A DNA stretch of 64,000 nucleotides from Ascoidea asiatica JCM 7603 (taxonomy: Eukaryota; Fungi; Ascomycota). The notes below the pieces were generated by a model. The model was not told the DNA's origin. It saw only the letters and a list, made by a program, of their open reading frames with translations, and searched no databases. The stretch is from positions 1,416,321-1,480,320 of the forward strand of contig BCKQ01000004.1 of the NCBI GenBank assembly GCA_001600695.1, in the 5' to 3' direction. Shown in pieces: positions 1 through 64,000 of this stretch; position 1 is the first letter of the stretch; every line of letters starts with the position of its first letter. Position numbers and translations under genes: made by a program.

Positions 1-251
1 TATAAATATTTGTAAGTTTTTATTTTTAAGGTAAAAAAAACTTTCATTGAAGTTGTGCATCACCCTTGCCTTTGTGTGCAGGTGGTTGAGAAAATGCGTG
101 AATATTGCGAAGAAACGAACGCATGCGCAAAATAGTTGGAAAATTTCCAAATTTCCCGATATGCAGAAAAAAGTGGGACATAAATATTAAAGTTTCGGAA
201 AAATAAAAAAAATAAAAAAAATAAAAATATAAAGAAAGTAGAAAAAAAAAC

Positions 252-325
252 TGATTTTGCCCAGGATCGAACTGGGGACGTTCTGCGTGTTAAGCAGATG
301 CCATAACCAACTAGACCACAAAACC
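252..325 (-). tRNA. tRNA-Val(AAC)
   Basis: Reverse complement GGTTTTGTGGTCTAGTTGGTTATGGCATCTGCTTAACACGCAGAACGTCCCCAGTTCGATCCTGGGCAAAATCA folds as a cloverleaf; anticodon AAC; oligo-T terminator follows. Confidence 0.97.
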
Positions 326-687
326 AATCTTTGGTTTTTCTTTTCCATTATTATTTTGAATACTTCTCTGGACAAGAAGTGTTTAAATTTTTTAAATATC
401 AAAAATGCTTTTTTTTTTTTTTTTGTTGGTTTTGATACACTTGAATTATTATTTTAATAATACTTTCAAAAAATTTAAATCATGAAAATCTTGTTTATAA
501 TAACTATTGAAACTAAATAGAGGAGTGAAATAAAAGATTGAGAAAAAGTAAATGAGTAAGTGAGTAAATGATAAATGAGAAATGAGTAAATGAGAAAGTG
601 AAATGATTAAATTCGTAAGATATAAAAAAGTTAATAAAAAAAAAGAAAGAAGAAAAGAATATTTTAAATCATTTGTTTTTCAATTAA

Positions 688-2268
688 TTAAGCAACTTCT
701 TCAATTGATTCTTTTTCATCATTCTCTTTTTCTTTTTGAATAATATTAATATCATCTTTAAGTTGAGATAAAGGTATAAATTTAGAAGAATGCCAAGCAT
801 GAGGATATTCATCATACATTTGATCAATTTCTTCTAAAGTTAAATTTTTTGTTTCATAAATCATAAAATAAGCAAAAATTGCAGCTAAAATATTACAACC
901 ACCCCAAATGAAAAAAACTTTTGTACCTAAATCTGCATTACCAGGACCAGAATCAATCATATATGGAGTTGCATAACCAATACCAAAATTCCAAATCCAA
1001 TTTGAAGCAGTTGATAAAGAAACAGATTTTGCTCTTGTTCTTAATGGAAAAAGTTCACCAACTACAACCCAACCAACAGGACCCCAAGTTGTACCAAAAA
1101 ATGCAATAAATATACAAGAAAATGCAATTAAACATTTTTTAGCAGAATCTGAATTTGCACATTCACCAATTATAGAAATTAAAAGATCAGAAATTCCCAT
1201 ACCAATTGCACCCCAAAATAATAATGGTCTTCTACCCCAAATTTCAATTAAAATTACACCTGGAATTGTCATAACAAAATTTGTAATATTTGTAATAACT
1301 TGAACAGTAAATGCATTTGTAATACCAGCATCTGCGAAAAATGTTGTACCATAATAAAATATAAAATTTATACCAGTTAATTGTTGTAAAGCTTGTACAG
1401 AAGTACCAGTAATAATTCTTTTTAATTGAGAATTACCAGTTCTAAAAACATCTAACCAAGTTGAACTACCAAAAGAACATTCATAATCATAATTTGCTTT
1501 AATTTCATTATATTCTTCTTCTAATTCTGGATGATTTATTGGTAATTTTCTTAAAAATGATAATGATTTTTTTGCTTTTTTTTCATTATTTTTAGTTATA
1601 AAAAATCTTGGAGTTTCTGGTAAAAAAATCATTCCAATACCTAAGATTAAAGCCCATAAAAATTGAATTGCAATTGGAATTCTATAAGAAGCAGAAGAAT
1701 CAATATTATGAGTACCTTGTTCAACACAAGAAGCTAAAAAAATACCTAAACTTATAGCTAATTGATAAATTGAAACAATTGCACCACGTAAACCTTTTGG
1801 TACAGTTTCAGCTTGATATAATGGAATTGTAGCAGAAACAAAACCTAAACCTAAACCTGCAATAAATCTACCAGCTAATAATAAACCAATTGTTGTTGAA
1901 GCAGTTTGTAAAACAATACCTAAATTAAAAGTAAAAAGTGAAGAAATAATTATTACCCATTTTCTACCTAAATTATCAGCAATAAATGGAGCTAATAAAG
2001 AACCTGAAAAAGTACCTAAAGATAAAATAGAAACAATAATTGAATGTTCTTTTGCAGTAAAAGCACCAGGAGTTGAAGGAAAAGTATTTAAAACATATTT
2101 CATTGCAATTATACCAGAAATTGAACCAGTATCATAACCATAAAGAATACCAGCAAAAGAAGCAAATAAACCAACTAATACAGAAGGTAAAATAGAAACT
2201 TCAGTTGGTTTTTCTGGTTTTTTATAAAATAAAGCCCAACATTTTTGTATAAATGAAACTTTTGGCAT
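688..2268 (-). CDS. MFS sugar porter (hexose/pentose transporter, Gxs1/Hgt-like), 526 aa
   Basis: Motifs GILYGYDTG, ADNLGRK, PETPRF, QQLTGINFIFYYG, GELFPLRTR, YETK; about 12 hydrophobic segments; no long Snf3/Rgt2-type sensor tail. Confidence 0.95.
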   Translation of the reverse strand: MPKVSFIQKCWALFYKKPEKPTEVSILPSVLVGLFASFAGILYGYDTGSISGIIAMKYVLNTFPSTPGAFTAKEHSIIVSILSLGTFSGSLLAPFIADNLGRKWVIIISSLFTFNLGIVLQTASTTIGLLLAGRFIAGLGLGFVSATIPLYQAETVPKGLRGAIVSIYQLAISLGIFLASCVEQGTHNIDSSASYRIPIAIQFLWALILGIGMIFLPETPRFFITKNNEKKAKKSLSFLRKLPINHPELEEEYNEIKANYDYECSFGSSTWLDVFRTGNSQLKRIITGTSVQALQQLTGINFIFYYGTTFFADAGITNAFTVQVITNITNFVMTIPGVILIEIWGRRPLLFWGAIGMGISDLLISIIGECANSDSAKKCLIAFSCIFIAFFGTTWGPVGWVVVGELFPLRTRAKSVSLSTASNWIWNFGIGYATPYMIDSGPGNADLGTKVFFIWGGCNILAAIFAYFMIYETKNLTLEEIDQMYDEYPHAWHSSKFIPLSQLKDDINIIQKEKENDEKESIEEVA

Positions 2269-3903
2269 TTTTATTTAAAAGTTTTTTTTTAAAGAATTTT
2301 ATTATTATCTAATATAATATTAGTAAATATAAAGATATATGTATATATATAAATAAATAAATAAATAAATAAAGAAAAAAAGAAAAAAAAGTAAAAAACC
2401 AATTTTGATAAGTAAAATAAAGAAGAAAATAAAAATCTATTTATACATGTATTGAATTTATTTAAAAATTTTGAAATTTATATATTGTTTAAACTTTTAC
2501 ATAATTTTGGATAGAAATGATTTGATAATTAGATAATTTAGATAAATGAGATAATTTAGAAATGAATATTGTTTTAAATTTGAAAGATTTAGAGAACTAT
2601 ATTTTTTAGTGAAAGTCATGATCAAAGTAAAGAAATAAGTAGCGAAATAAGAGAAAAAAAGAGAAAAAAAGATCATATTCAGCCATTGAAAGAGAATAAT
2701 AAAGAAAAGCAACCCCAGAAAAGGAACTGGAATTGAATAACTTTAAAAAACAAGAAAAAAGAAGAAATAACAAGAAAAGAGAAGAAGAGAAATGTGGTCA
2801 ACGGATCATTATTACCGTTAGAGCTAAGAAAAATAAGCTTAAATAACAAGCTTAAGCTAAGAGAAATAAGCTCAGGAGAATAAGAAAATAAGAAAATAAG
2901 AGAATAGTCCGAGGGTCCCCGAAGTCCCCGTGGGGCAGCGACAGCTGCAAACTCGGACGCGGCTGCATGCACGACTCCAGACCGGAAAAGCAGCGGAAAA
3001 AAAAACAAAAAGAAGCAAAAAAAGAAAGCAGCCAATCAGAGCAGCGGAACGCGACACAAACGCAGCACTCGCACCAGGGTTTTCAGGATTTTCAGGATTT
3101 TCTTCCGGGATTCCAGATGGCGGTGGAGGTGCTGGATAAATGATTGAGCACCAGCCACAAAGAGATTTATCCAGCTCTGAACTGGCGCTGAATTGGCACT
3201 TCATTTGCATTGAATTGGCGCTGAATTGGTGTTTTTTCTTCTTTCTCAGTCTTTCAACGAGCAAATTCAAAGAAATTCAAAGAAATTCAAAGAAATTCAA
3301 GGAAATAAAGCCAATTCAAGGAAATAAAGCAAATTCAAGGAGACGTGGAACAGATTGAAATAAAAATATGATTTTATTCTCTTACAAGGCTTATTCATTA
3401 CTCATTACTCATTACTCATTGCTCATTACTCAACTACTGCATGTATTCTTACTCCTGAGACTGTTCCAGATATGGCAATCTCACTCAGCTTCAATTTAAC
3501 TTACGTAACTTGTTTTCTAAATCTTATTCCTTTTAATCTGTTTTTTTTTTGTTTTTCTGATGTTTAAATATCAAATTTAAGCCATTTTTTCAAATTATAT
3601 AATCCCTATACTAAGGCGTTATAATAAATTGAAATTCAATTTAAATATAATAAGAGATATCCGATAATACGCGTTTTTAAGGATATTCAAAATTTATTTA
3701 CAATAAAATATATTAAAAAGTTCCCTTTTATTAAGCAGTCTCCTCATTTATCATTTATTTATTCGCTTAATATAATTGTTTGAATAAAATTTTTTTTTTC
3801 ATTACGTTCAATACATAAATCTACATTCATTGAAAATTTATTAAACTTCATACCTGTTTGTATTGCCGTGGTAGTTGGTTCATTATTTCTTGGACTGTGT
3901 GTT

Positions 3904-3977
3904 GGTTTTGTGGTCTAGTTGGTTATGGCATCTGCTTAACACGCAGAACGTCCCCAGTTCGATCCTGGGCAAAATCA
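3904..3977 (+). tRNA. tRNA-Val(AAC)
   Basis: Identical 74-nt inverted copy of 252..325; poly-T terminator. Confidence 0.97.
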
Positions 3978-4067
3978 GTTTTTTTTATATATGTATATAT
4001 ATATTTTTTCTATATTCAAAAAATACTCAATAATAATTAAAAAGAATTTCTTCAATGCAAAAAAGAA

Positions 4068-4150
4068 TGAAGGATGCGAGGTTCGAACTCGCGCGGGAAT
4101 CTCCCAGTAGATCTTAAGTCTACCGCCTTAGACCACTCGGCCAACCCTCC
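4068..4150 (-). tRNA. tRNA-Leu(TAA)
   Basis: GGAGGGTTGGCCGAGTGGTCTAAGGCGGTAGACTTAAGATCTAC...GTTCGAACCTCGCATCCTTCA; long variable arm; anticodon TAA. Confidence 0.97.
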
Positions 4151-4312
4151 AGAACGTTAGTACCACAATTACTTGATCTAATATCAACATATATTTTAAC
4201 AATAAAACTAGTAATGTCTATAAATCATATGATTTACCATTTCGATATTACTATTGAAGATGCGGATAATTCAAAATTGGACTTATATGTTTTTACACAT
4301 TTTTATTCTTTT

Positions 4313-4383
4313 GCGTAAGTGGTTTAGTGGTAAAATTCGACGTTGCCATCGTCGGGCCCCCGGTTCAATTCCGGGCTTACGCA
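4313..4383 (+). tRNA. tRNA-Gly(GCC)
   Basis: GCGTAAGTGGTTTAGTGGTAAAATTCGACGTTGCCATCGTCGGGCCCCCGGTTCAATTCCGGGCTTACGCA, 71-nt cloverleaf. Confidence 0.97.
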
Positions 4384-4558
4384 GTTGTTTAATATTTTTT
4401 TTTTTTTTTTTTTTTATTTTTGATGATTGTTAAATCAATATTATGGATTTTAATTATTATATTTAAATCAAATAATATTCTCTACAAAGGTTAAAACATT
4501 GAGAAATAAAAAAATAATTCAACTAGATAGTAAAACTACCTATAAAACAAAAAGTAAG

Positions 4559-4654
4559 CACCCGACGTGGGAGTCGAACCCACAATCTTCTGATGACTGA
4601 ATTGAACAAAGTTCTAATAGAAGTCAGACGCGTTAACCATTACGCTAGCCAGGC
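4559..4654 (-). tRNA. tRNA-Arg(TCT) with 23-nt intron
   Basis: GCCTGGCTAGCGTAATGGTTAACGCGTCTGACTTCTA[TTAGAACTTTGTTCAATTCAGTC]ATCAGAAGATTGTGGGTTCGACTCCCACGTCGGGTG; intron at canonical 37/38. Confidence 0.95.
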
Positions 4655-5102
4655 TTAATTATAATTTTATGTTTCTAGTTTATTTTCTCTTTTTTCTAAG
4701 TAACAGTAAGAAGTGATACATTTTATGTCATATGTTCACGTGCTCAGTTTTACCGGAATTCTTCTCCATTAAACTAAACAATATTTCCTAAAATGGCCTA
4801 TTTCAGGGTTCATTATAATATGTTATACCTTTCCCACTGCTTTACTTTCTTATATTATATTATATTATATTATATTATATTATACTATTATTACTACAAC
4901 GTTTTTTATTCAATAATAGATTTGATTAAATGTGAAATAGTGAAGTAATAAAAATAATAATAAAAAAATCAGAAAATCTCTAAAAAAATATAATAGTAAT
5001 TAAAGAAATAAAAGCAAAAAAACAAAAAAAAAAGAAGAAAAAAAAATTGGGTATTGAGAAATTTATAAAAAAAATTATATATCTATTGATTAAAAATTAT
5101 TA

Positions 5103-36452: not shown

Positions 36453-36848
36453 TGAAGTTTTGAATTGAAAGTAGTAAGTAGTAAGTATTAAGAAGTAATA
36501 AGAAAGAATAAATATATAGACTTGAAAAAAGCAAATTGATGAATATCAATAGTTTTATTTTATTCTTTATAATAGATCAATTGATGATTCTTTTGGATTA
36601 CTTGAAATATATGAATTGATAAAATACAGTAACAGTTATCAGTTATCAGTTACCAGTTATTATTGTTATCATGATTCTCTTGTCTGGAGTAAACATGGAA
36701 CTGGAACTGGAACTGGAACTGGAACTGGAGAGCAAGGCAACAGCAACGGGAGCCAAGGAGAGGAGACCCAGAGAAGTGGCGCCACAATTAACACGTGAAA
36801 TGATAGTTTGTACTGCCAATTTCAGAAGGCGTCTTTTTTCATCAAACT

Positions 36849-36931
36849 GGAGGGTTGGCCGAGTGGTCTAAGGCGGTAGACTTAAGATCTACTGGGAAAT
36901 TCCCGCGCGAGTTCGAACCTCGCATCCTTCA
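36849..36931 (+). tRNA. tRNA-Leu(TAA)
   Basis: Same as 4068..4150 except one variable-loop base. Confidence 0.97.
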
Positions 36932-37050
36932 TTCTTTTTTGTTTACTCAATTTAAATAAATGAGTTCAATTTATCTTGCTGTTTTTACCGTAAATATCCT
37001 CTTTTGAAGTAGAGTAGGTTTAATATTGTAATTTGGGTAAATAAATTAAA

Positions 37051-37084
37051 GCGTAAGTGGTTTAGTGGTAAAATTCGACGTTGC
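37051..37084 (+). pseudogene. 5' half of tRNA-Gly(GCC), 3' half deleted
   Basis: First 34 nt identical to 4313..4346, then joins directly to the sequence that lies downstream of the intact gene. Confidence 0.92.
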
Positions 37085-37251
37085 TTAATATTTTTTTTTT
37101 GTTTTTTTATTTTTGATGATTGTTAAATCAATATTATGGATTTTAATTATTATATTTAAATCAAATAATATTCTCTACAAAGGTTAAAACATTGAGAAAT
37201 AAAAAAATAATTCAACTAGATAGTAAAACTAACTATAAAACCAAAAATAAG

Positions 37252-37347
37252 CACCCGACGTGGGAGTCGAACCCACAATCTTCTGATGACTGAATTGAAC
37301 AAAGTTCTAATAGAAGTCAGACGCGTTAACCATTACGCTAGCCAGGC
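37252..37347 (-). tRNA. tRNA-Arg(TCT) with 23-nt intron
   Basis: Identical to 4559..4654, intron included. Confidence 0.95.
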
Positions 37348-37681
37348 TAAAAATCGATGAACGTTATACTATATTACCAACCTCACACAATTATCAAATT
37401 CTGCTGATATATAGTTATAATTTTAAGTCACGTGTTGAAATTGGCCGGATCTCATTATTGTGAACTCACCGGTTCCAGCGTTTAATACCTTTTTCATTAC
37501 ATTACCTTCTTTTATTTATTGATTATTACTACGACTGTATTCTTATTTGATTTGTAAATTATTTCATTTCATATATTTACTTCTGCGATACAATAATAAC
37601 AAGAAGAAAAATAGCAATTTGAAAAAAAAACATTTGGGTATTGAAAAGATTTTGAAAACCTTACTTGATGACCATGGATTT

Positions 37682-37792
37682 CTATTCATTACTTTCCATT
37701 AACTCACTTGATATATCTCCTAATAAATGAAACTGAATAAGACAACATTGAATCATTCATGCTCTGGGATTACGTGCCAAAAATCTAGTAAT
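37682..37792 (-). pseudogene. Relic of a third multicopper oxidase gene (C-terminal copper motif region)
   Basis: Translates ITRFLARNPRA*MIQCCLIQFHLLGDISSELMESNE*, which aligns to [35 protein letters not shown] of 5103..7094. Confidence 0.85.
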
Positions 37793-38116
37793 CGTTAATT
37801 TCATTTGATTCAATTTCAAGCTCAATTATAATATTACTGACATTCAATTTGCGATCTTAAATTATATCAAGTAACAATAGTGTATTTTAATTCTTATATG
37901 TAGACCACTCTTTTATCTACTTTAACTATTCCTGGTTTTAAATTTAAATCAGATGGTAAAGTTTTTTTTAAATAAATTCAACATTACTTAAAAAATCTGT
38001 AGTTTTTTTATATAATATTAATAAACAAAAGTCTTTAAGTTTAAGACATGAAGAAAATTGACTAAAATTTATATTCAAATTTACCAAATCCTATTGGGCA
38101 ATTAAAAAAAAAAGAG

Positions 38117-38140
38117 TGCTAATTCTGTGGATCGAACACA

Positions 38141-38173
<33 letters not shown>

Positions 38174-38189
38174 GCTGAGCTAAATCAGC
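38117..38189 (-). tRNA. tRNA-Phe(GAA), intronless
   Basis: GCTGATTTAGCTCAGCTGGGAGAGCGTCAGACTGAAGATCTGAAGGTCCTGTGTTCGATCCACAGAATTAGCA. Confidence 0.96.
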
Positions 38190-38315
38190 GAACTATAAAA
38201 CCCATTGAGTATGGCCTTAGAATGATCCAAAAGAGTTTGATTTACGGGTGCAATTATTTTGGTTATGTCCCGTGACTGTCCCCAAAAATTTATGAGCGAA
38301 AAATTTATGTTATTA

Positions 38316-38387
38316 TCCGAGGTAGTGTAACGGTGATCATACCTCGCTTTCACCGAGGAGATCCGGGTTCGACTCCCGGCCCCGGAA
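38316..38387 (+). tRNA. tRNA-Glu(TTC)
   Basis: TCCGAGGTAGTGTAACGGTGATCATACCTCGCTTTCACCGAGGAGATCCGGGTTCGACTCCCGGCCCCGGAA; one A.C mismatch in the acceptor stem. Confidence 0.93.
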
Positions 38388-38740
38388 CAATTTATTATGT
38401 TGGTTTTTTTATTTTGTTTTTTGTTTGTTTTTGTTAATTTCAAGATATATGAAAAGTAGTTATCATATTCTATTAGTTTAAAGTATTAGTCTTTTTAAAT
38501 AATTTTAAAAGACTTGATAAATTTTGGCAATTCTATCAAAATTTCAATTCAAACTACAATTCCTTTATTATTTATAACCAGGTTTTTATTTTTATTTTTT
38601 TAATTATAAATTGTTATTGGAATCATTTTCCAACATGGATTTTATTGTGAACTGTTTGTAAAAAATTGTTTTCATTTATTTCTCACCTTCTTTAGTTCTT
38701 TTAACTTAAAGAATCAATAAATAAATCATTGGAAATATTT

Positions 38741-38821
38741 CGGATTATTTATTAGTAAAATCGGATAAATTTCGGAATAAATCGGATAAATCTTCTTCGG
38801 ACAATTTGTTTTCACGGAAAA
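38741..38821 (+). promoter_or_regulatory. Six tandem CGGANNA (Rgt1-type) sites upstream of the sugar porter
   Basis: CGGATTA 38741, CGGATAA 38762, CGGAATA 38773, CGGATAA 38783, CGGACAA 38798, CGGAAAA 38815. Confidence 0.7.
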
Positions 38822-39480
38822 TGCGCCACGTTCAAGACTGATTTAAATGCAAATGACATTACTATCTTTAGGAGCATAAAATACTGACAAGAAAAAGACC
38901 CAAGTCATTTTATTGTAAGCATCAATAATAAAACTAAGGATAGTCTGACAATTGATCTCTTTTACTCAATAAAACTGACATTAATTGTTCTTTTAAAGTG
39001 ATGTCAAGATAATATTTCTTGATTTTTTTTATATTTATCTATAATTTAATCAATATCTCTCAATATTGATATTCTCAGAGTATCATAAGAGTGAAAAAAA
39101 GTTTAATTACTACACCCAAATTAATTAGGTTTGACAAGTGGAACAATTTATGAAATAACAAATGGAGTAATTATGGAGTAACACTGGGGTATTATTAGTT
39201 ATGGAATAACTATTAAATTGGAAAAACATTGATGACATTAAATAATTATCAAAAATGTTTATATTTATTGAAAATAATATAAAAAGTCAAGGATTCTTCA
39301 ATAAAAGTTAATTAATTTCCTTTTATTATTCATATTATATATTTATCAATTATAATAATATTAATTATTTTACTATTTACTATTTATTATTTATTATTTA
39401 TTATTTATTATTTACAATTTACTATTACTTACAATTTACATTTTTAAATTCCATTACAATTACAAAAAATTCAATAACTA

Positions 39481-41088
39481 ATGGGAAAATTCATTAATTC
39501 CAAATTTTGGACAAAATTTTATTCTCCACCAGAAAAATCAAGTGAAGCTTCTTTAAAAGTTTCTATATTAGTTGGTTTATTTGCTTCATTTGGTGGTATT
39601 CTTTATGGTTATGATACTGGTTCAATATCAGGTGTAATGGCTATGGATTATGTTAAAAAAACATTTCCAAGTGATCATACAGATTTTTCATCATCTGAAC
39701 ATTCATTAATTGTTTCTATATTATCTGCAGGTACATTTTTTGGATCATTATTAGCACCATTATTTGCAGATACTTTAGGTCGTAGATGGACCTTAATTCT
39801 TTCATCATTTTTTATTTTTAATCTTGGTGTTATTTTACAAACTGCTTCAACATCAATTTCATTATTAGCTGCAGGTAGAGCAATTGCAGGTTTAGGTTTA
39901 GGTTTTATTTCTGCTACAATTCCATTATATCAATCAGAAACAGTTCCAAAATCAGTTCGTGGTGCAATTGTTTCATGTTATCAATTTGCTATAACTATTG
40001 GTATTTTTTTAGCTGCATGTGTTGAAAAAGGTACACAAAATAAAAATAATTCTGGATCATATAGAATTCCAATTGGTTTACAATTTTTATGGTCATTAAT
40101 TTTAGGTATTGGAATGATTTTTTTACCAGATACTCCAAGATTTTGGATTCATAAAGGTAATGAAGAAGAATCTAAAAAATCACTTTCAAGATTAAGAGAA
40201 TTACCTTTAGGTCATAAAGAAATTGAAGAAGAATATGATGAAATTAAAGCAAATTATGATTATGAATGTTCTTTTGGTAATTCAACATGGATTGATTGTT
40301 TTAAGAAATCAAATAGTCAATTAAAAAGACTTATTACAGGTACATCATTACAAATGTTTCAACAATTAACAGGTATAAATTTTATATTTTATTATGGTAC
40401 AACATTTTTTGGTAATGCAGGTATTAAAAATGCATTTACAGTTAGTGTTATTACAAATGTTGTTAATATGATTATGACAATTCCAGGTATTTATTTAATT
40501 GAAGTTGTTGGTAGAAGACCATTATTAATTTGGGGAGCAATTGGTATGTCAATTGCAGATCTTATTATTGCAATTGTTGGTGAATGTGCAAATTCAGGAC
40601 CTGCAAATAATTGTTTAATTGCATTTGCATGTATTTTTATAGCATTTTTTGCATCAACTTGGGGACCAGTATCTTGGGTTATTGTCGGAGAACTTTATCC
40701 ATTAAGAACAAGAGCAAAATCAGTTTCAATGGCAACAGCATCAAATTGGTTATGGAATTTTGGTATTGCATATGCTACACCATATATGATTGATTCTGGT
40801 AAAGGTAATGCAGATTTAGGAACAAGAGTTTATTTCATTTGGGGAGGATGTAATGTTTTATGTGTTTTATTTGCATATTTAACAATTTATGAAACTAAAA
40901 ATATGACATTAGAAGATGTTGATGTGATGTATGATGAATATAAATATGCATGGCAATCATCAAATTTTAAACCAAGTTTAGAAAAAACTCAACAAATTAA
41001 TAAAGATCATGCAGATGAATTAGCCAAATATAATTCTAATTTAAAAGTTGAAACATCAAATGATTCAAATATTGGTGATAGTTTCTAA
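39481..41088 (+). CDS. MFS sugar porter, paralogue of 688..2268, 535 aa
   Basis: Same sugar-porter motifs; colinear and highly similar to the first copy. Confidence 0.95.
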   Translation: MGKFINSKFWTKFYSPPEKSSEASLKVSILVGLFASFGGILYGYDTGSISGVMAMDYVKKTFPSDHTDFSSSEHSLIVSILSAGTFFGSLLAPLFADTLGRRWTLILSSFFIFNLGVILQTASTSISLLAAGRAIAGLGLGFISATIPLYQSETVPKSVRGAIVSCYQFAITIGIFLAACVEKGTQNKNNSGSYRIPIGLQFLWSLILGIGMIFLPDTPRFWIHKGNEEESKKSLSRLRELPLGHKEIEEEYDEIKANYDYECSFGNSTWIDCFKKSNSQLKRLITGTSLQMFQQLTGINFIFYYGTTFFGNAGIKNAFTVSVITNVVNMIMTIPGIYLIEVVGRRPLLIWGAIGMSIADLIIAIVGECANSGPANNCLIAFACIFIAFFASTWGPVSWVIVGELYPLRTRAKSVSMATASNWLWNFGIAYATPYMIDSGKGNADLGTRVYFIWGGCNVLCVLFAYLTIYETKNMTLEDVDVMYDEYKYAWQSSNFKPSLEKTQQINKDHADELAKYNSNLKVETSNDSNIGDSF

Positions 41089-41412
41089 TAATATCACTAA
41101 AGATATCAATTTACCATTCAATTCTATTATTTTTTTTTTTTTTTTTCTTTCATTATTTATATTACTTTTCATTATTTGCATTTATTTATTTAGTTCTTAA
41201 CGACTTTTTGTTTCGCTTGTTCTTTTTTTCTTCATGATGATATATTTTACATAGAATTTCAATAGATTTTTTATTTAAGTATTTAATTTTCAATTATAAA
41301 ACAGTAAAAAAGAAGCTTGAAAGCAAAATAAGATAAATATTAGACAATTATTTATTGCAAATAAAAATATATAAAGTATACCGTATAGTGTACCGTATAT
41401 ACTAAAAAGATA

Positions 41413-41483
41413 TGCGTAAGCCCGGAATTGAACCGGGGGCCCGACGATGGCAACGTCGAATTTTACCACTAAACCACTTACGC
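41413..41483 (-). tRNA. tRNA-Gly(GCC)
   Basis: Identical to 4313..4383 on the opposite strand. Confidence 0.97.
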
Positions 41484-41730
41484 TTTGCTGTACAACTGAA
41501 ATTCTTTGTTTCTCTAGGTAAAACAAGCAGTGAGTAATTCTGCTTACAGTGTGCAACACTTTGATTTACGTTACCACCCAGTTTCTTTACAAAGTGAAAA
41601 TGTAGCAAATCAGAAGATTAACTGTTTGTGAATCCATGATTACGGTTCTCTTTGTATCAGTTGTATCATTTTTCTTAGTGTAATCAATTACTATCCTCAA
41701 AATGATTGAGGATAACAAGCGCAACAAACT

Positions 41731-41813
41731 GGAGGGTTGGCCGAGTGGTCTAAGGCGGTAGACTTAAGATCTACTGGGAAATTCCTGCGCGAGTTCGAAC
41801 CTCGCATCCTTCA
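41731..41813 (+). tRNA. tRNA-Leu(TAA)
   Basis: Leu(TAA) body; variable arm variant GGGAAATTCCT. Confidence 0.96.
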
Positions 41814-43297
41814 TCTTTCTTTATTATTTTTTTGTCTTTTAAATGTATATTTTTATTTAACTTGTTGGTGATCGTTCAAAGAAGCATTAAGTTAATGGAA
41901 TCATTTTAATTGCTTTTGATATATTCAATGTTTGGTAGCCAATTCTTTGACCAATTTGGCGAAGTTAACTTCGATCAAACTAAAAAACTAAGCAGTATGA
42001 TATTGAGAAATGCTACAGTTGGAAATCTCTTGAATCCAATTCAGTGAAGTACAGATTTTTGAGATGAATCAATAATCAAATATTTATTAAACGTTATATA
42101 TAATTTCTCAAATACTTTTTCTAATAAAAACCTAAAAAGACGAATTGAAAGATAACAAAAATTGACAAAAAGAAAATAAAAATAGTAGATGATAAAAATT
42201 AGATAAAAAAAAACGTATATATAATAACTAAATAATGTTTTTAAATGAGAAAAATAGAAAAAAAAATGAACTCGAATAAAAATAGAGAAAAAAATAAATG
42301 AATAAATGATAATTGACTAATAATATATTCAATTGAAATAAGTATTTTGCCAAACTTATGTGGAATCCTTTTTTTTGTAGTTCTTCATTCACTGGAATAA
42401 TTTAATGGTTTTTGTATCTTTATCAGTTCTAATAGTTCTTTTGGAATTTATTGCAATTCAACAAAATTCGAAAAGGTGTTAGTTTTTCAGGAAAAAAATT
42501 AAAGTAAAAGATTTCTTGAATGAAATAATAATTTAATAAATTTCTAATAAAATGAAAATGTATGAAAATGTATGAAATTGTATGAAATTGTATGAAAATA
42601 TCAAAATATAACAATTTACTTTTTGTAGAAAATCGCATTTGATAAAGAAAAGTAAATAATTAAATAAATCAGTAAAGCTATTCAACTAATAAAATCAGTT
42701 AAAAATCTTGAAATTAAATAAAAATTGAATATATGAAAAACAAAACAAAAATTAACAAACATAATAAATGAAAACTTAAATTAATAATAAAACTTGAAAA
42801 TTTTTACAAAAAAGGTAAAATAAATGAAATATGAGAAAAAAAAGATGAATAAACGAAAAAAAAAAAAAAAAAATGTTTCTAACAACATAATAAATAAATG
42901 GCAAATGTTCCACTGAAATACAGAAACATTTGATACTTTTCAACCAATTTCCATGAACTTCAACAAAATTAAACTATGCAAGAAATGAACTATGAAGAAA
43001 TATTACCAGTTTAACAACAAAAAATTATGACAATAAGATTAAACTTATTTAAATGTATTATAGTCAATTTTCATTTACTCTTTTGAAATTTATTCATTTT
43101 ATCAGATCTTTTATCAATGATTAAAAAAATTCTTTAAAATAATTTCAAAAAGCAAAATAAAAACAAAGATAAATATAAATATAAAAATGCAAACAAAAAC
43201 AAATAATTGAACTCTCTGACCTTAGAATTTGTCAATTAAATTCATGTATACAAAAGCACAATCATTAGAAAAAAAATAACTCCTTTATAATTTACCT

Positions 43298-48762: not shown

Positions 48763-49067
48763 CCCTTTAATCCCAATTTTTGTGCTTTTTGTCGTAAAGC
48801 AATTTAACAGCTAAACGAGGCACGTGAGTACCAAACACTGTAGGTATTTACAATTTGTCTACAAAAACTAAACGGGATCTTAGAAAGACCACGTGCTTTA
48901 AAGTAAACTACTTGAGTAAACAGTATTACTACATCCCTACTTAATGCGGGATTAATGTTATAACTTATTTTTAATAAATATTTCAATTTTTTCTACACAG
49001 GTTTACACGTGCTCGTAAAGCCCAAAATTGCTTTACGACAAAAAGCACAAAAATTGGGATTAAAGGG
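48763..49067. mobile_element. 305-bp non-autonomous piggyBac-type MITE; 43-bp perfect TIRs; ATAT target-site duplication
   Basis: CCCTTTAATCCCAATTTTTGTGCTTTTTGTCGTAAAGCAATTT at 48763..48805 and its exact reverse complement at 49025..49067; ATAT on both sides (48759..48762, 49068..49071); related TIR at 61863 next to a piggyBac transposase relic. Confidence 0.9.
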
Positions 49068-61503: not shown

Positions 61504-62017
61504 TTCAGCATATAAGTTGGTAATATTATTTCGTGTATTCTTTGAATATTTACTGTATTGAACATCAAATAAATATATAAAAATAAATACAAAAAATTTA
61601 ATACTGTTTTTTATTGAGTTAATCAACCATAGTTCCAATCGTAAATAGAGTGTTTTGACGATGAGAAACAGGTCACAAACAAAGTGTTTTCAAGTCGCGG
61701 GCAAGGTTGATTTTTTCAAATAAATCACAAAATATGTTGAGAGGTATACATGCTGTTAATATCTGGAGGTGTACTATCTGTCATTGAATGATTTTTCTTC
61801 AATCACGTTTTGTTACATAATCAACATAACTTACCAATATCAAAATTTACTATTAGAAATATCCCTTTAATACAACCATTTGTGCTTTTTGTCGTACCTG
61901 TTTTATTGATTATTACCCTCCTCTAAATTAGACATTTTAAATTTGAATTTGACTAAAAATTATTTGATTTACTATACTATTGAATTGAATTTTAATAGTA
62001 ACATATACAGTAATATC

Positions 62018-62180
62018 TATTCATTATAATTAACTACTAACTTAGAATGTATATTATATAGATATGTTTCTTCGTTCCACTTTTTATTTCTTATATATTC
62101 ATTATAATTAACTACTAACTTAGAATGTATATTATATAGATATGTTTCTTTGTTCCACTTTTTATTTCTTATATATTCAT
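62018..62180. repeat. 78-bp tandem duplication (about 2.1 copies, one mismatch)
   Basis: CATTATAATTAACTACTAAC... recurs at 62022 and 62100. Confidence 0.95.
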
Positions 62181-62544
62181 AATAACACATATTCTTTTTC
62201 ATCATTTTTAACCAATTTTATTATATTGATAAATATAATATTTGAAGACTAAATTTGATATTTGCAAATTTTCGTCAAATTACCCAAAAATATTAGCTGT
62301 GTCATACAAACGGCACCCACCCACACCTCCGACAGTTGCGATGTGTTGAAAAATTTGAGCGTATTAAGAATTGTTTAGTTTTATACAACAATGCGGCATT
62401 TGATTCCTGTCTAATAAATCTTTTTGTAATCACTACAAAAGTTCTGAGCATCATGCAACATTATTAGGAACTTTGTAATTAAGTTTCCAAGATGCGGGAT
62501 CTTATTAACATTTAGTAAGAACTTTGGCAATCATGCAAAGATTA

Positions 62545-62735
62545 TAGAAAAAGTAACAAGTTTCTGGGAAATTTTACATTTTTACAAAAATGAAGAGAAT
62601 TGTACAGGATTTCATAAGAGCTGTGTAATTATTACAAAGTTCTTAGAAAAAGTAACAGGTTTCTGAGCAGTTTTACACTTTTACAAAAATGAGGAGCACC
62701 GTGCGGGATCTCATAAGAACTCTGATATGATTACA
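62545..62735. repeat. Degenerate 99-bp tandem repeat (about 2 copies, fragments upstream)
   Basis: TAGAAAAAGTAACA at 62545 and 62644; TTTTACAAAAATGA and TCATAAGA recur at the same period. Confidence 0.85.
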
Positions 62736-63439
62736 GGCTTCTCCAACATTTTAATTTTCCACTTGGAACTTTGCTACGGTAGCAAATATCCAGCAGTATT
62801 AGCCGTGATGCTGCGTACAGCTCAAGTTTGTTCTGTCAGGTGCGAGGCGGACCAATAAGTTATACTCTTACTAGATCTACTAGGTGCTAAACACGTCACA
62901 GCAGGTTGTTGGTTATTATTACCAAAACACTTAGGTTTATATTTTAGCACCCAAATAATTATTACCTTTTGAACACCGTCCATATTCAACCCTTTTTGTG
63001 TTAAAGAAGCACGTTCCAACCCGAGAGCAGAAAATCAAAAATATTTATTAAATTATTGCTATTAAAGTAATTACAAATTAAAAAGGGATAAGGTAGTACC
63101 ATTAAAATCACGAAGTTCTGCGCGCCATTTAGGTCGTGGGAACTTTAGTGCATGAGCACAGTTCGGTATCAAGATATAGGTCAAGCCAGCAATGAGGGCC
63201 AAGGTGGGCAGAGCAGCTCGGACACTCAAAGCAAGAAAACAGGACCTTCAAATGCTGCTTAGCTAAGTAGCAGTAACTATAACGGGCTTTCTACGGGAAT
63301 TGATCGCATAATGAGACGCCGGATTAAGCAGGCCTATCCGCGTCGCAGCACTAGCACCGGAGTTTTCCTGAATATGTTTTTTAGCCACAATATCAATATC
63401 ACTGAACTCAACAAAACTTAGTAACTTCTTACTGCACTT

Positions 63440-64000
63440 TTTTTTTCAAAAGCACGTGACTGTTAATAAGAGCCACATCAACCAAAAATAAAAAAGACTA
63501 CTAAAGCTATTTTTGTAAACCCTCAAATGGGATGTGTGACTTGCTCAGTATTGGTCGGCAATATCCACAAGATTCAAGTGCTGGTTGTACTGATCGATAA
63601 CCCTCGGAATAGAAACTTACGTTTGATTACCACTTTTGAAAATTTCATTAATTGAAAAATTAATTTGCCCTAAACTTTTGGTGTTTGGACGGAATTGTTT
63701 TTCACAACATTTTCATTTAGGTCATGGGCCGTACTAATCCGGAACTCAATGTTTCTGCTCATTAATGCAAAACATGCAACACCTTCATCATATTGATATC
63801 CAAGTTCGTTTCATTGTAAATCATTCTTTTTAGTTTTTATATCGGACAAGGTTTTAGCATAGGACCACTTGGATCAGTTAGTACCAGTACCCCGAATGTC
63901 AACTTTATTCTTTAACCATTGAAATAATTTAATCCAAGTAAAATGATTATCCTTATAAAAAAATGGTACCGGATTTTTAACCTCCGCCTTTAAGAAACTG
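63440..64000 (-). pseudogene. piggyBac (DDD, DDE_Tnp_1_7-type) transposase catalytic region with stops and frameshifts
   Basis: Manual minus-strand translation: FYKDNHFTWIKLFQWLKNKVDIRGTGT (DNHFT at 63937..63951), ISTAHD, IPRVIDQYNQHLNLVDIADQ (YN..DQ at 63551..63589), FLVDVALINSHVLL (63447..63488). These are the piggyBac motifs DNxFT/GT, ST.H, YN..MggVD..DQ, D.A..N.y.l in correct order. Confidence 0.88.

Follow-up and report, generated by a model that had tools for sequence, protein, structure and literature searches.

The right-hand end of the 64,000-nt stretch of DNA analyzed here (the window; C4:1416321-1480320 in the 20.3-Mb, 71-contig assembly of a budding yeast, which was the genome scanned) holds a dead copy of a cut-and-paste transposon of the piggyBac superfamily. 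Its protein and its termini are those of the superfamily, but it is not a canonical piggyBac, as it lacks TTAA at its flanks. Comparison of these flanks with those of related elements, and with sites that have no insertion, suggests that the relic belongs to a fungal piggyBac subgroup that likely inserts at (G/C)TATA(G/C) with a 2-nt stagger at T^ATA, so that AT is duplicated, and whose donor site would reseal seamlessly if the excision hairpin takes 2 nt. The first-pass annotation of this sequence had proposed an ATAT-targeting piggyBac transposon in a budding yeast, and our analyses bear out the family, the host and a target other than TTAA. With regard to the host, the neighboring GH76 gene has 69% identity to its homologue in Ascoidea rubescens and no more than 61% to those of other named yeasts, which makes the yeast a relative of Ascoidea.

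The relic is 3,823 bp in length and runs from position 61863 of the window to 1,685 bp beyond the window edge, with its transposase encoded on the minus strand. The parts beyond the window, in order from the 5' end, are a terminal inverted repeat (TIR; L031:4973-5006, at C4:1482005, window-equivalent 65685) that is followed by ATAG, the transposase N-terminus, a nested 190-bp LTR-like piece (L031:4100-4289), and the first catalytic motif with the omega loop (L031:3738-3968). These are followed by a stretch of ~230 bp that is not present in the copy on contig C29, the broken transposase core with the second and third catalytic Asp (63440-64000, minus strand), which has several stops and frameshifts, and the remnant of the C-terminal cysteine-rich domain (63129-63290, minus strand), recognized by its Cys pattern. 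A short 3' untranslated and subterminal region (62991-63128, minus strand) is contiguous with the TIR in the relative on contig C20; in the window, a 1,086-bp non-coding repeat of another family (61905-62990), missing in that relative and overlooked in the first-pass annotation, lies between them. The element closes with the 34-bp 3' TIR (61863-61896, minus strand), which starts CCCTTTAAT. The terminus beginning CCCTTT after ATAT that had been noted earlier is present at 61859-61868, and the second TIR that had been sought proved to be the one at C4:1482005, which differs from the first by 4 mismatches over 34 bp. The TIR pattern had 26 matches in the genome, versus none for a reversed control.

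The transposase motifs that had been recognized on the minus strand were all located, and in order, spread over three frames and broken by stops and frameshifts: DNHFT (63951), GTGT (63891), ISTAHD (63738), YNQH (63589), DIADQ (63565) and VDVAL (63482), with the second catalytic Asp in DNHFT and the third in DIADQ. Searched alone, the short transposase pieces of the window gave no Pfam match; against a fungal piggyBac profile, the element's own frames matched at iE 9e-12, 2e-9 and 5e-15, and sister copies passed the cut-off of PF13843 (DDE_Tnp_1_7) with 59.1 bits (C29), 42.7 bits (C15) and 30.7 bits (C32). The DDD triad is complete in the C29 and C32 copies, and the window copy has kept the second and third Asp and has His in place of the first. 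An intact equivalent of the cysteine-rich tail in the C29 copy has a weak match to zf-Tnp_2 (PF13842; E 0.06) and can be aligned to the corresponding tails in relatives. All of the hallmarks of the superfamily (a PF13843 transposase, the DDD triad, a cysteine-rich C-terminus and CC(C/T) TIRs) are therefore represented. Transposase pieces were searched separately in this work, and X read-throughs were used in scripts only.

Judged by its sequence, the yeast transposase is of the fungal type, scoring 267 bits on a fungal-type profile versus 137 on an animal-type one. There was no close protein among 1.84 billion representatives (none at E 1e-30). The best matches to the whole core were fungal-type proteins, one of which clusters with Morchella sextelata. 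A protein of an insect-like clade (P0001) was the best match of the C-terminal piece alone and proved misleading, as the whole-core scores favor the fungal proteins. In a tree, the yeast protein has a long branch that joins next to the fungal crown, its exact placement not being fixed by the faster tree method, and the branch dividing the yeast and fungal types from the animal TTAA clade has ~1.1 changes per column. Horizontal acquisition, which had been raised earlier as a possibility, is unsupported: our searches gave no close donor, and the long branch adjoins the fungal clade. Transfer is neither shown nor excluded, and old vertical retention would account for the data equally well.

We observed that a -1 frame change occurs at the same place in the window copy (~63700-63670) and in the 72%-identical C29 and C32 copies (L034 ~4960-4995), just ahead of a 21-nt stretch that is identical in both subfamilies. 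This could be a coincidence, which is plausible, or a programmed shift. An intron or a programmed frameshift was considered at this place and is unsupported, and no fitting 5' splice site was found.

At least seven transposase relics are present in the genome, and every one examined was broken. An intact source transposase, which the first-pass annotation had suggested looking for, was not found in the assembly, where PF13843 and protein hits carried stops or had open frames of at most 262 aa. The window copy and the C29 copy have 72% DNA identity and a dN/dS of 0.29-0.45, which indicates that the two subfamilies diverged as working elements under purifying selection and that the window copy would have decayed only after the split. 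Two families of MITEs, of ~202 bp and ~305 bp, were also found in the genome, and their derivation from the piggyBac element is the best explanation of both. Most copies of the ~305-bp family are 94-99% identical, and these near-identical MITEs may have been moved recently by a transposase of which no intact copy was found in the assembly. One member lies within the window (48763-49067; 305 bp, with 43-bp perfect inverted ends), and its closest sister copies are 94-99% identical to it. Contigs from public runs of two samples, one of which may be the source of the assembly, also contain the element. In a run of the second sample (X3), diverged sequence was observed over L031:1660-4730 (e.g., 22 differences in 300 bases at partial depth), which suggests that the insertion is old and its alleles have diverged, or that there is an additional copy.

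The flanks of the window element are ATAT (61859-61862) ahead of CCCTTT and, at the far end, ATAG after GGGG, from which we infer a pre-insertion site of A-TATA-G; the left copy of the inferred 2-bp AT duplication is at 61861-61862, within the flank A-TAT. Up to nine independent two-ended copies were available in the yeast (C5a, C5b and C46 were counted separately on the strength of their differing BLAST end points). Their flanks are ATAT/ATAG (the window element), ATAT/ATAT, ATAT/GTAG, GTAT/ATAG (twice), CTAT/ATAC (twice), ATGT/ATAA and TTAT/ATAA, those of the copies on C1, C2, C5, C8, C10, C15, C18, C28, C46 and at C13:390k coming only from pattern searches by which the ATAT and TATA hypotheses were tested. 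The ends of the elements start with CCC (or CTCC), and what is constant around them is TAT at one side and ATA at the other, with AT adjoining both ends in 7/9 copies and GT at one side in the other two; two single ends have TCT and TTT. The outermost base may be A, C, G or T, and it is G or C at 10 of 18 ends, against a GC content of 26% (p 0.007).

These flanks bear directly on the earlier proposal of an ATAT-targeting lineage, in which a 4-bp ATAT duplication would be the rule and the other flanks would have arisen by later mutation or mismatch repair. ATAT is indeed present at the 3' end of the window element, at an end of the C29/C32 copies, and at both ends of the window MITE. That MITE is, however, the only two-ended copy with ATAT at both sides; a 4-bp direct repeat was seen at 1/9 yeast sites and at 1/39 related sites (below), the outer base is biased toward G/C rather than A, and young, near-identical copies differ at it. 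Variable outer bases had been named in the first-pass annotation itself as grounds for giving up the proposal. Along with the empty sites described below, where the net gain is 2 bp and not 4, these observations make a 4-bp ATAT duplication so improbable as to be almost negligible.

Empty sites were available for a MITE found on contigs C41 and C32. In six paralogues of its host gene, the BLAST matches to the two flanks overlap by exactly 2 bp, and five of the paralogues read TCTT-TATA-AGAA, versus TCTT-TAT[CCC..GGG]ATA-AGAA at the filled site. The empty sites thus have TATA, and the gain on insertion amounts to the CCC..GGG element and a further 2 bp. Two other empty sites, independent of this one and at related loci with paralogues that are 91% and ~77% identical, likewise have TATA and a net gain of 2 bp, so that only one of the three comes from this yeast; a search for empty sites of the window MITE and of a MITE on C13 gave none. 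A 4-bp ATAT duplication is excluded at the C41/C32 site, since it predicts an empty site 2 bp shorter than the TATA observed. The same result weighs against a TA duplication with TCCC termini and an empty site of N-TA-N, the parsing given by Belfiori et al. 2013 for the truffle element Ti_tr1. This published reading is compatible with every filled junction (PMC3864998), but its empty sites should be 2 bp shorter, and that is excluded at the C41/C32 site; as all three independent empty sites keep TATA, we regard it as very improbable. The gene in which the C41/C32 MITE sits (L038:3563-4171) is a member of an uncharacterized multi-copy family, with paralogues on C2, C3, C4, C6, C26 and C29.

The same signature was observed well outside this yeast. 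We examined 80 metagenome loci, whose fungal origin was deduced from relatives and neighboring genes, and an unbiased search for inverted repeats placed the boundary at TAT in nearly every element. Among 39 distinct two-ended related sites, the junctions were N-TAT|..|ATA-N in 39/39, the columns at -1 and -2 being partly imposed by our terminus rule, and the T at -3 (78/78 ends) and the inverted-repeat boundaries being free of it. The base at -4 was G or C at 60 of the 78 ends, against 47% GC (p 5e-8). TTAA, the duplication of canonical piggyBac, occurred at none of the sites (0/9 in the yeast and 0/39 among the relatives). Two Morchella copies of 2,393 bp that are 98.9% identical have the flanks CTAT/ATAC and CTAT/ATAG, three of the four ends of two Histoplasma elements fit the pattern (the remaining end has GAT), and further metagenome elements share it; an element from Photinus has TTAA|CCC. 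These comparisons indicate that the altered target marks the whole of a widespread fungal clade and is not peculiar to this yeast. The earlier idea of a transposase with altered target specificity thus holds in that the target is TATA rather than TTAA, and fails in that it is neither ATAT nor specific to the yeast.

The clade was not found in viral contigs, a TIR pattern search of the metagenomes gave no matches, and prokaryotic genomes yielded one short match that is probably contamination. A 2.2-kb contig in a Thioglobus MAG (L146) encodes a relative of the transposase and is probably eukaryotic contamination. Members of the clade cluster locally: two related elements in Histoplasma are 40 bp apart (L059, 1380-5922), and at another locus an intact element is bracketed by two MITE copies (L060, 1822-5361).

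The closest proteins to the yeast transposase are those of piggyBac-like elements of the Pezizomycotina (Morchella sextelata, Histoplasma), which have the same terminal signature; the yeast protein, on its long branch, is ~25-35% identical to them. Ti_tr1 of Tuber indicum almost certainly belongs to the same clade. It has a PF13843 transposase, by eye the same first-Asp and omega-loop motif (Fig. S10 of that report), and printed junctions that read C-TAT|CCC..GGG|ATA-G (PMC3864998). The yeast element shares with it both the N-TAT|C..G|ATA-N junctions and the placement among fungal-type transposases. The authors, who parsed a TA duplication and TCCC ends, left its classification unclear, and the report covers a single element, without a clade-wide rule or a TATA empty site (PMC3864998). 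A similar ambiguity as to whether AT is duplicated attends the ATon MITEs of Aedes aegypti, which are TIR elements that insert at AT and for which no transposase is known (PMC3422177). A review of the superfamily treats non-TTAA flanks as rare mutations (PMC5381638), and in a survey of DNA transposons across fungi, piggyBac is recorded for Mucoromycota, Microsporidia and Pezizomycotina but not for Saccharomycotina (PMC5751038).

Our literature search on piggyBac elements targeting ATAT, TATA or AT returned only the truffle paper, and no paper stating the TATA/AT rule was found; Repbase lay outside that search and may hold it. Two piggyBac groups with non-TTAA targets, piggyBacA and piggyBacX, are in Repbase/Dfam, and the search found no paper describing either. 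A broader claim, to which we would give somewhat less than an even chance, is that a piggyBac subgroup spanning the Ascomycota has so far escaped correct description, in Repbase as elsewhere, and that its transposases would cut (G/C)TATA(G/C) either bluntly or with a 2-nt stagger and leave no footprint on excision.

The profile of the clade matches the Trichoplusia ni (T. ni) piggyBac (PDB 6X67/6X68) and Myotis piggyBat (PDB 9C0F) at E 4e-46 and 4e-52, respectively. The clade has in common with them the DDD core (PF13843), the cysteine-rich tail, a single ORF, CCC..GGG ends and a sequence-specific palindromic 4-mer as target. It differs in having TATA with a 2-bp gain in place of TTAA with a 4-bp duplication, and in its longer TIRs (34 bp in the window element, ~30-60 bp in relatives). 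There is also a difference in the omega loop. The T. ni enzyme nicks at the 3' G, holds a 4-nt TTAA hairpin with this loop (R275, Y283, K290), and makes insertions that are staggered by 4 nt (PMC7351741). At the position of Y283, Tyr is present in 84/85 animal-type proteins, whereas Lys or Arg is present in 45/49 fungal-type proteins and Val in the yeast. The Tyr that contacts the TTAA hairpin is thus replaced in the yeast and fungal clade, whose omega loop has an H-T motif.

By analogy with T. ni piggyBac (PMC7351741), we propose that the enzymes of the clade nick at the GGG 3' ends, which would then be joined to each strand of the target at T^ATA; the resulting 2-nt 5' stagger would duplicate AT. 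If the hairpin formed on excision carries 2 nt of flank, the donor would be left with complementary AT overhangs, and TATA would be restored with no footprint. An alternative for the same clade and target is that the true ends are T-CCC..GGG-A and that insertion at TA^TA is blunt, with no duplication. The filled and empty sequences are identical under the two models, so that sequence cannot separate them, and the nearly invariant T at -1 would suit blunt insertion. We nevertheless consider blunt insertion unlikely, because piggyBac ends start with a conserved C (PMC5381638) and the solved T. ni enzyme integrates in staggered fashion (PMC7351741). The reciprocal GT|AT and AT|GT junctions of copies on C13 and C1 lean weakly the same way, as they would fit a TGTA target whose 2-nt overhang was mismatched and then repaired. 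A 2-nt stagger with duplication of AT is the reading we prefer.

The targeting of TTAA and the 4-nt hairpin are treated as the hallmark of piggyBac and as the explanation, in structural terms, of why its excision leaves no footprint (PMC7351741). Should the subgroup be as we propose, it would represent a natural change of target and cleavage geometry inside the piggyBac fold. A large natural clade that shares this fold, uses TATA and gains 2 bp makes the setting of stagger length and target choice directly testable, and the omega-loop difference offers a concrete site for such tests. Candidate vectors whose insertion spectrum would differ are the intact ORFs of the clade, among them the 625-aa ORF of P0332, and the 98.9%-identical Morchella copies. 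With this element, piggyBac joins the DNA transposons recorded for Saccharomycotina. The yeast copy is dead, and its own interest is modest.

During these analyses, we noted several other features. The 1,086-bp repeat nested in the 3' end of the element has internal direct repeats of ~94 and ~99 bp, and about ten copies of it occur elsewhere at 69-96% identity. It belongs to an unclassified, non-coding repeat family of ~1.1 kb (61905-62990; L042-L049), the members of which end near ATTGA(T)TATT and ..TCAAC and have imperfect flanking repeats of 7-9 bp; the copy on C39 also adjoins a degenerate piggyBac TIR. The 190-bp repeat within the transposase gene, bounded by TG..CA and accompanied by an adjacent purine tract (L031:4100-4310), has more than 20 genomic matches at 72-84% and is likely the 3' end of an LTR retrotransposon. 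Elsewhere in the window, 13 clustered tRNA calls were observed (251-4654, 36848-41815, 50789 and 58139), four of them tRNA-Leu(TAA); two others, 97 bp long and given as Asn(ATT), may be mis-called intron-containing genes.
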